The position numbers were made by a program, and so were the translations under genes. A stretch of DNA of 63,441 nucleotides, the filler included, from Ministeria vibrans ATCC 50519 (lineage: Eukaryota; Protista; Filasterea): the NCBI GenBank assembly GCA_943704425.1. It is 8 parts of 8 records of this genome, joined end to end, with 100 filler letters (N's around TTAATTAATTAA, not from the genome) between each part and the next. Parts side by side here need not be neighbours in the genome. Positions count along the whole stretch, not along the records: positions 55,069 to 57,012 come from CALSCP010002693.1; 7 more parts are not named here. One strand, 5' to 3'. The notes under the pieces were generated by a model that saw nothing but the letters and a program-made list of their open reading frames with translations, was not told where the DNA came from and did no database searches. Below, piece by piece: positions 1-57,012 of the stretch (position 1 is its first letter; every line of letters begins with the position of its first letter).

Positions 1-70
1 CCCCCCCCTCCCTCTTAATCGCCTTGTTTCTCCCTCCCTCTCTCACACGTCATCCCTCTCTCATGCGTAC

Positions 71-4559
<4,489 letters not shown>

Positions 4560-55068: not shown

Positions 55069-56154
55069 TTGATGAGATGGGGCAGATGCGTCGTGATGGA
55101 GTGGTACGGCTGCTGCAGCCAATGGATGAGCGTGTGGCTCTTTGGTCGTCGCGCCGTGTGCGGCGGCTGTTGTCACGGTCGTGCTCTCCGATGGCTCTGG
55201 GTCTGCTCTGTGACGTTTTGTTGGTGCGCGAAGAGTTTCACGCCAAGACGGAGGTTTTGCACGTCAAGGCACATGTGACGGATCGTGTTCGGACGCGTGA
55301 GGAGGAGTGGGACGAGCGTGCTGATGGGATTGCTCGCGGTGGTCTTGAGCGTTTGCGTGGCAATATGGAAGGGAACAATGAGTATTTGGCAGAGCTGGCA
55401 ATGCGTTGGGACTGGTGTGCGTTACTGGGGTCGACGCCAATCAGTGGCGTGTGCATTCGCTTGGGTTGCGATGGCCGGGACCGTCGAGTGGAGCGCGCGG
55501 ATGCCGGAGCGGCCAATCAGGTGCCTGTTGATAGGGCTGGTGCTACTGCCGGTCTAGATTTGCAGGATCATAATGCAAAACGACTGTTGAAGGACGTGCA
55601 ACGTGATCGACTGTGGCGTGCGATGTCGGGCCATGTGCACCAGGGCAAGGTCGTTCGGGAGTCTGGTCATGAGTGGGTCAGGAGTGTGACAAGTAAGGTG
55701 GAGTGGAACGTCCGTCGTTTTCTTGTGCGTCTATGCTGTGGTCGATTGCCATGCGCTGCGGTGCAAAAAGGAGCGGAAGCTACGGGACTCAGCGTTGTGT
55801 CCTGAATGTGGCGACGAAAATGAAGATGTGGACCACATGTTTGCGTGCACTGCATCTGGGGTTAGTGCTATAGAGCGCGCCCGGGGCGTACTACAGGCAG
55901 GCTTTCAAGAATGGTTGCAGGATGCGTCACAGGATGGTGCGAATGCGCAGGTTGCACTGTGGCTTGTGCCGTTTCAAGTGATGCGTCCATCGGTTCTTGT
56001 GTCAGGAATGTGGCCACAAGCGGTGCTGGAGCGTTTCAGTGAGAGTGAGCGTGTTCGTCTGAAGAAGATGGCGTCAAATGTTGTGAAAGACATGGTGACG
56101 TGGTATGAGATGTGGGCCAAACGAAGATTTTCTGTTGCGGCAGATAGAGTCTGA
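55069..56154 (+). mobile_element. 3' part of a non-LTR (LINE-like) retrotransposon ORF2: RNase H C-terminus + CCHC zinc knuckle, frameshifted
   Basis: VLHVKAH...EGNNEYLAELA (RNase H), RLCCGRLP, then in another frame CPECGDENEDVDHMFAC. Intronless. Confidence 0.75.
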
Positions 56155-56918
56155 GTTTGTTGCTAATGTCGGACGGTGGGACTGTGGCGGTGGATGCTGG
56201 CATGGTAGTGGCAGTGTTGGCTGGCCAAGGTGGTGGTGGTGGCGTTTGGTTGGGTGTTCTTGGTTGCAATGGAGCACTTGAAGAACGGCGTTGGCTATGT
56301 CGACGCCGCCGTTCGTTCCCATAGGGATCCTTTGTTTTTGCCAGTAGAGGTTGTCGTCGTAGGTGACAATGTTGTTTTCAAGCACAGGTTTGAGCAAGTC
56401 TTGAATGACGACGCCAACACGGCCAAGAGAGGAGTCGGCGATTTTGGCAATTGTGGTCTGCATGAGCTGCCACGAGAGTGACGGGTAGAGAGCCTCCACG
56501 TCTGCTGTGGCAATGATGACGTCGTTGGGCACGACAAGAGTTTCAAGACGAGCCACAAGCTGCGCCGAGTTGCGCAGGACTGTGTGACAGTCAGTGTCGG
56601 CGAGCGCACCGTTATAAGCAGTGTAGTTATTGTGGACCACGGTGGCATTGTTGATTGCGTGCTCTCGCAGGAGAAGACCGAGGAGAGTAGACGGGTGGCT
56701 GGAGACGTACGAGTGGGCTGCTGCGATGGGCCTGCCAGCCCAAGGATGCTTGTGAACTTTGGGAATAATGCAGAAGCGTGGCAAGCGGAATGAGGCAAGC
56801 TTGTTCTCTGAGTGCCTTTTGATGAACATTGAGATGTTACTGCGAAGTTCGTCTGCGTGAAGCGCTGGAAGGCACCGTAGGAAGGTCGTATTGGTGTACA
56901 ACCTACAGACACGAGTCC
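56140..56918 (-). mobile_element. Penelope-like element (PLE) reverse transcriptase, 5'-truncated and cut before YxDD
   Basis: PRFCIIPKVHK...GRPIAA, ATADVEALYPSL and YWQKQRIPMGTN...IAN are PLE-type RT motifs 1-2, A and B'. The frame is open up to the telomeric array with no ATG. Confidence 0.88.
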
Positions 56919-57012
56919 AGGGTTAGGGTTAGGGTTAGGGTTAGGGTTAGGGTTAGGGTTAGGGTTAGGGTTAGGGTTAGGGTTAGGGTTAGGGTTAGGG
57001 TTAGGGTTAGGG
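56919..57012 (+). repeat. Telomeric (TTAGGG)n array at contig end
   Basis: About 15 perfect units running into the contig edge, G-rich strand pointing outward. Confidence 0.95.

Follow-up and report, generated by a model that had tools for sequence, protein, structure and literature searches.

A truncated Penelope-like element capped by TTAGGG repeats at a probable chromosome end of Ministeria vibrans

The DNA considered in this work (the window) is a stretch of 63,441 nucleotides from the filasterean protist Ministeria vibrans ATCC 50519 (assembly GCA_943704425.1), in which eight parts of eight records are joined, and the analysis has been carried out on the piece at positions 55069-57012, a 1944-bp contig (CALSCP010002693.1). 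A TTAGGG array extends to the right edge of this piece at 57012. Next to it lies, on the minus strand, part of a reverse transcriptase (RT) gene of a Penelope-like element (PLE), and further inward the 3' part of a long interspersed nuclear element (LINE) is found on the plus strand (Table 1). The stretch 56273-56921 is very probably a defunct remnant from the interior of a PLE of the Athena/Coprina type, which lacks an endonuclease, and its 5' break has been capped by TTAGGG repeats.

The analysis of the array with TRF has given a period of 6 with 100% matches and a score of 188, and TTAGGG on the plus strand is the orientation expected of a right-hand chromosome end. Translation of positions 56074-57012 on the minus strand yielded alternating proline and stop codons in the repeats and then, from 56922, an unbroken frame that holds PWTRVCRLYTNTTF, PKVHK, GRPI, TADVEALYPSL and PMGTN and finishes at a stop codon in 56074-56076. 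TRF and translation agree in this with the original prediction, made from the sequence alone, that (CCCTAA)n runs straight into an open RT frame without start codon that reads inward from the telomere. The range proposed there (56140-57012) and the description of the element as 5'-truncated hold in part: RT homology covers 56273-56921 and ends sharply at 56273, the positions 56140-56272 are antisense of the 3' untranslated region (3'UTR) of the LINE, and the copy is broken at both ends, on the 5' side at the telomere repeats and on the 3' side at 56272/56273. The part of the frame beyond 56273 (56272-56077) is noncoding antisense of this other element, open by chance.

A phmmer scan of 1.84 billion representative proteins has produced 625 relatives, including the protein P0001 (665 aa), whose residues 192-405 match residues 2-215 of the query with 95% identity (E 2e-130). 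By blastn, the 649 bases of the fragment align without gaps, at 96.5-96.9% identity, to each of seven contigs (L001-L007) that carry full copies of the element. Only the RT fingers and palm, from motif 1 to motif B, are included in the fragment, and the GxKF and DKN motifs described below are not in it because they lie upstream of the truncation point. A phmmer search of the fragment against the PDB sequences gave nothing meaningful, and its identity as an RT rests, by sequence comparison, on the full-length relatives.

When compared to the consensus, the fragment differs at 20 of 649 positions (3.1%), 18 of them transitions, which affect 10 codons synonymously and 10 non-synonymously and include neither a stop codon nor an insertion or deletion. 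One of the changes replaces by arginine the invariant G388 of motif B. Because of this divergence, the lost G388 and the near identity of the full copies, which differ mutually at 0-6 positions across the same stretch, the fragment is an inactive relic rather than the product of recent insertion; the copy had already been described as decayed. The private variant defined by the 20 substitutions was present in none of the 24 listed runs, the likely source run included; the share of words was about 0.58, that of the LINE part alone, and the four runs examined show the same consensus at all 20 private sites.

The full copies were obtained from Logan assemblies and from marine metagenome assemblies of ENA, as contigs of 3.3-3.9 kb that encode P0001 and its cluster mate P0152. 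The element is about 3.6 kb long, and on every one of the seven contigs an open reading frame (ORF) of 385 aa, ORF1, is followed by ORF2 of 665 aa; the divergence among these intact two-ORF copies is 0-0.9%. In an alignment of 74 relatives, residues D147, K148, K245, H247, R254, D331, D432 and D433 are invariant, N149-L150-G151 are nearly invariant and a GLKFIP consensus is found upstream. The GxKF/Y and DKG motifs are diagnostic of PLEs (PMC8557442), and DKN is the Coprina form of the DKG motif (PMC13159263); the full copies have GxKF together with DKN. The RT motifs of P0001 are K245/H247, R254-P-I, D331, QxxGxxMG and YVDD at 430-433. An RT with a thumb, as found in PLEs, is also present: relatives reach the Pfam gathering score of RVT_1, and the thumb of P0001 ends in RGYP and is followed by just 109 aa (in the relatives, a median of 100 aa follows the thumb).

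No GIY-YIG domain has been detected in P0001 with Pfam up to an E value of 10, nor in Pfam scans of P0001 together with 19 relatives (20 proteins, all the longest included), which gave RVT_1 or nothing, and a GIY...YIG regular expression matched 0 of 152 proteins. The Pfam scans of P0001 revealed no APE or REL endonuclease, RNase H or integrase domain either. Judged from these sequence searches, the full copies are an endonuclease-deficient PLE.

Among mobile elements, PLEs without an endonuclease are the closest kin of telomerase. An alignment-based AlphaFold2 model of P0001 (pLDDT 87.9, pTM 0.89) has been compared to the PDB, and the seven best Foldseek matches were all telomerase reverse transcriptases (TERTs). 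With VIA-align the top eleven rows were also TERTs (Z 16.5-19.2, 320-403 residues, model range 1-577), and the RTs of R2, LINE-1 and group II introns followed with Z values of 14-16, aligned only from about residue 150. A sequence-profile search of the PDB placed TERT (E 5e-5) below generic, retron and group II RTs. The TERT affinity of ORF2 is accordingly a structural one, seen in a predicted model.

A minimal type-I hammerhead motif has been found in the 3'UTR of the full copies, about 160 nt past the ORF2 stop (3459-3497 in L002). It consists of CUGAAGA, a bulged A, a 6-bp helix II closed by the G10.1-C11.1 pair, GAAA, the palindrome CG, U-U and then a 4-bp helix I, with a predicted cleavage position after GAAACGUU. 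A descriptor of this minimal hammerhead found a single match in each copy, always on the sense strand, and none in 2000 shuffles. The bulged base after A9, the G10.1-C11.1 pair and the palindromic 15.2-16.2 positions are the traits given for the minimal hammerheads of PLEs (PMC4209133), and all of them are shown by the motif of the full copies. In addition, the contigs L010 and L011, which carry a relative (P0153) with 30% RT identity, share both the design and the location of the hammerhead, with helices I and II that differ in sequence and co-vary. From these sequence features the motif is considered a putative hammerhead ribozyme located, as in other PLEs, in the 3' region.

Other features have been observed in the 3' region of these elements. 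A long imperfect inverted repeat, or hairpin, lies directly past the ORF2 stop and upstream of the hammerhead (L002 3314-3390), and Rfam gave for it a weak miRNA-like score only (E 0.72). The contig of another relative (P0003, on L012) is circularly permuted with a 30-nt overlap, and its 3'UTR contains a hammerhead-like CUGAAGA...GAAA-GUAC-U-C with an extra base before GAAA, which the descriptor does not match.

The full copies end in reverse-complement telomeric repeats. In L002 the 3'UTR enters about 11 CCCTAA units at 3642-3708, about 145 nt downstream of the hammerhead, the end of L007 has at least 4 units, and about 2 units separate tandem head-to-tail copies. Five contigs of about 3.63 kb are circularly permuted, with terminal overlaps of 30-55 nt that correspond to head-to-tail units, and L002 opens with the final part of the copy before it, in keeping with the tandem or pseudo-LTR arrangement of PLEs. 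About two CCCTAA units are found also within or at the end of ORF2 (L001 3366-3379) and just before ORF1 (L001 259-269), and the more distant relative L010 has two units before ORF1 (5-17) and two at the ORF2 stop (2902-2914); these units may be a conserved pairing site for G-overhangs.

The full copies bear on most of what had been predicted from the fragment. The assignment to PLE RTs agrees with GxKF, DKN, the hammerhead motif and the TERT-like fold, and the Athena/Coprina-like polarity and telomere cap with the (CCCTAA)n 3' ends and with the single polarity of all junctions seen. The endonuclease status, which the fragment could not reveal, is now visible in an ORF2 of 665 aa that ends about 109 aa past the thumb and lacks GIY-YIG, and the hammerhead that had been raised for full-length copies occurs as one minimal motif in each.

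Table 1. Features of the analysed piece (positions of the window).
Feature	Positions	Strand	Evidence or description
Telomeric array	56919-57012	+ (G-strand)	TRF: 15.7 perfect TTAGGG units
Telomere/PLE junction	56919-56921	none	3 bases common to element and repeat
PLE ORF2 internal fragment, codons 191-407	56273-56921	-	phmmer, blastn, codon comparison
LINE/PLE joint	56272-56273	none	3'-truncated plus-strand LINE meets 3'-truncated PLE; at most 1 base (A) common
Non-LTR (LINE-type) retrotransposon, 3' part	55069-56272	+	98.8% identity to L008 2906-4109

The neighbouring LINE is best seen in L008, a Tara Oceans scaffold in which it occupies 16-4485 and encodes a 1324-aa ORF that is incomplete at the 5' end and contains RVT_1 (E 1e-16) and zf-RVT domains. 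The piece contains the C-terminal part of this long ORF, cut by the left edge and ending at a stop codon in 56152-56154. Two overlapping plus-strand ORFs appear in it because of a 1-nt insertion at about 55765, a frameshift seen against all four runs; a phmmer search of the plus-strand ORF against the PDB sequences gave nothing meaningful. The first 118 nt or so of a 3'UTR of about 475 nt are kept. Complete copies run about 355 nt past the position equivalent to 56272 (L008, L009) and end in ...CATGTCTCGG followed directly by TTAGGG, and this end abuts TTAGGG in the same register in three independent contigs. Contig depth of the LINE is about 4-10 times that of the PLE. Positions 4486-4776 of L008, after three TTAGGG units, are about 290 nt unlike either element that end in an 18-nt T run and may be a third subtelomeric component.

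In L002, past the (CCCTAA)11 block, the reverse complement of the LINE 3' end is found with 98.9% identity, so that LINE sense, (TTAGGG)11 and full PLE antisense follow each other in the order and polarity of the piece studied here. Loose ends of contigs in run X1 include LINE copies broken at 55892 and 55976 with TTAGGG next, and TTAGGG ahead of 5'-truncated LINE copies at 56019 and 56181. At all telomere junctions seen, the G-strand is co-linear with LINE sense and PLE antisense, and the neighbour looks like a telomere-repeat-associated LINE with polarity opposite to that of the PLE. A strong excess of G over C marks the plus strand throughout 55069-57012, with skew values of 0.17-0.53 in all 200-nt windows. 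As the sense strand is rich in G in the LINE and rich in C in the PLE, it is the G-rich strand that heads to the telomere along the whole piece.

The two joints of the fragment have been placed by homology. For the distal one, the blastn homology to L001 ends at 56921 and the array begins at 56919; the plus strand reads ...GTCCAGG and then GTTAGGG, the AGG fitting the PLE and the repeat alike, and this overlap would fit the extension of a cDNA end by telomerase. At 56273, loose ends of contigs were found in runs X1, X2, X6 and X8, with further PLE ORF2 on the side before the joint and further LINE 3'UTR on the side behind it.

In the model given in the literature, endonuclease-deficient PLEs prime on exposed chromosome 3' ends, such as deprotected telomeres or breaks, and telomeric repeats then cap the truncated 5' end (PMC3846280). 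The piece contains one copy of this kind, 5'-truncated and capped by telomeric repeats, with its 5' end facing the terminus. According to the mechanism proposed by analogy with Athena and Coprina, the CCCUAA run of the PLE RNA would pair with a G-overhang that has become exposed, or the RNA would be primed on a bare eroded end; the 3'-OH of the chromosome would prime reverse transcription and the cDNA would lengthen the G-strand. An early stop of synthesis would have produced the 5' truncation at codon 191, and telomerase would have added TTAGGG to the cDNA end, here finishing in AGG. Terminal priming, healing by telomerase and a true terminal position are inferred from this comparison. For the proximal joint two origins may be proposed: a later deletion of about 1.5 kb in an L002-like layout, which would remove the end of the LINE 3'UTR, the repeat block and the 3' part of the PLE, or internal priming of the PLE RNA at an end where erosion had reached the LINE.

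Several observations weigh against a telomere-capped PLE relic of the Athena/Coprina type. Pfam found no RVT_1 in the fragment and only sub-threshold noise (DddA-like, and zf-RVT at 0.23) in a scan that included both plus-strand ORFs, and motif C, the DKN motif, the hammerhead and the 3' repeats, all absent from the fragment, are drawn from its relatives. The 3' truncation is not an end that simple priming through a 3' CCCUAA run would yield. The hammerhead descriptor was written after the candidate had been seen, and the Rfam models recognised no hammerhead in L001 or in the 3' region of L002. The kinship to Athena and Coprina is drawn from shared features. Finally, no contig in the four runs spans either junction, and telomere repeats are also interstitial in L002 and L008, so the array may not be the terminus.

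This last point leads to the strongest of the alternatives, in which the identity of the elements is right and the contig simply stops within a TTAGGG array interstitial between stacked subtelomeric elements. The same species does have internal blocks, of about 11 units between LINE and PLE (L002), of 3 units (L008) and of about 2 units where PLEs stand in tandem, and with a fragment diverged by 3.1% the junction is not recent. However, the present array is longer and perfect, with variant units found in the internal block of L002, its orientation is that of a true end, and an array that is now interstitial would still mark where a chromosome once ended. An interstitial array is regarded as possible, although less likely than not. 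That the 1944-bp contig is an assembly chimera of LINE, PLE and telomere repeat, with junctions that do not exist in the genome, is quite unlikely. Its three parts are all repeats, the junctions are unspanned as said above and none of the indexed runs contains the PLE variant (share of words about 0.58); the coverage of the piece by the four runs consists of Logan contigs, and the PLE part is covered by consensus contigs only, with the 20 differences. Nevertheless, Logan contigs drop rare variants, so this absence is expected. Abundant copies are of the consensus type (depth about 242 in X1), and their bases would be expected in a chimera assembled from abundant reads, whereas the 20 private substitutions are spread over 56331-56865, to within about 60 nt of both junctions, which argues against such a chimera. 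In addition, L002 has independently the order of LINE followed by antisense PLE, with the same polarity.

The RT could also belong to another class, either a telomere-specific LINE (HeT-A/TART or SART/TRAS), a DIRS or LTR element or the TERT of the host. The lack of a Pfam hit in the fragment and the rank of TERT under generic, retron and group II RTs in the PDB profile search would fit with this, but GxKF and DKN stand N-terminal of the RT, the hammerhead motif is present, no APE/REL endonuclease, RNase H or integrase domain was found and the best fold match is TERT with the N-terminal 150 aa included, all of which leaves such an assignment extremely improbable. The host TERT gene was rejected because the element is multi-copy, with an ORF1 and tandem units. 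A LINE-type RT was rejected for the minus-strand frame in view of its PLE motifs and TERT-like fold, LINE-1 and R2 matching lower and from about residue 150. A LINE-type RT with APE or gag, as in telomere-specific non-LTR elements, is not what the minus-strand frame encodes, and the plus-strand neighbour is an element of such a kind.

The telomere-capped PLE relic remains the preferred reading, and a broader one may be built on it, which we consider unlikely at present: chromosome ends would be a mosaic of the abundant LINE within TTAGGG arrays and of the endonuclease-less PLE added onto ends with the opposite polarity, with telomerase repeats between them and with the PLE primed also internally on eroded ends. 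If this were true, the joint at 56272/56273 would record the healing of a bare end by a retroelement, and not only of a deprotected telomere.

The element described here adds a well-preserved example, with intact two-ORF copies, a minimal hammerhead and CCCTAA ends, to a group that bears on the origin of telomerase and has a sporadic known distribution, and it shows a PLE and a telomere-associated LINE together in one subtelomere. Sequences of the PLE and the LINE occur in marine, seawater, algal and Tara metagenomes, and the host is thus common enough to be met in Tara Oceans and other seawater samples. The gain is incremental with respect to the mechanism, which had already been proposed for Athena and Coprina. 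The novelty that the original prediction attached to the lineage was probably overstated, as endonuclease-deficient PLEs, found sporadically in animals, fungi, protists and plants, had already been reported from protists (PMC3846280, PMC8557442, PMC13159263).

Among known systems, the element apparently combines features of Athena and Coprina, with two ORFs and a palindromic helix III on one side and DKN on the other, in a comparison made by features only. Coprina is known from fungi, Selaginella, the kuruma shrimp and the diatom Phaeodactylum (PMC13159263), and is similar in the lack of GIY-YIG, the DKN variant, RT motifs 1-7 and the thumb, as well as in the telomeric repeats on both sides of the copies and the location at chromosome ends, probable in the present case. 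Classical Coprina elements have one ORF, unlike the two of this PLE family; Coprina-1_Alen likewise has a pair, with a coil in its first ORF (PMC13159263). Athena, known from bdelloid rotifers, shares with the element the two ORFs, the 5'-truncated copies capped by telomeric repeats and the head-to-tail arrays, and also the short reverse-complement telomere repeats in the 3' region with a hammerhead of small palindromic helix III (PMC8557442, PMC3846280, PMC4209133). However, the repeat is here TTAGGG and not that of rotifers, and the hammerhead is placed about 145 nt before the terminal repeats. The hammerheads reported for PLEs of fungi and protists are built with a large helix III (PMC4209133), in contrast to the minimal palindromic ACGU helix III found here.

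More distant systems offer partial parallels. HeT-A, TART and TAHRE of Drosophila resemble the proposed working of the element in that they use the chromosome end as primer, direct their 5' end toward the terminus and form head-to-tail terminal arrays, but they are non-LTR elements of the jockey clade in a host without telomerase, whereas the present element has a PLE/TERT-like RT, and telomerase repeats cap and separate its copies. TERT itself is the best structural match, including the region N-terminal of the RT, and like TERT the PLE enzyme would extend chromosome 3' ends. In contrast to TERT, with which it has 11-16% identity, the PLE is multi-copy and mobile, is accompanied by an ORF1 and copies its own RNA instead of a short template.

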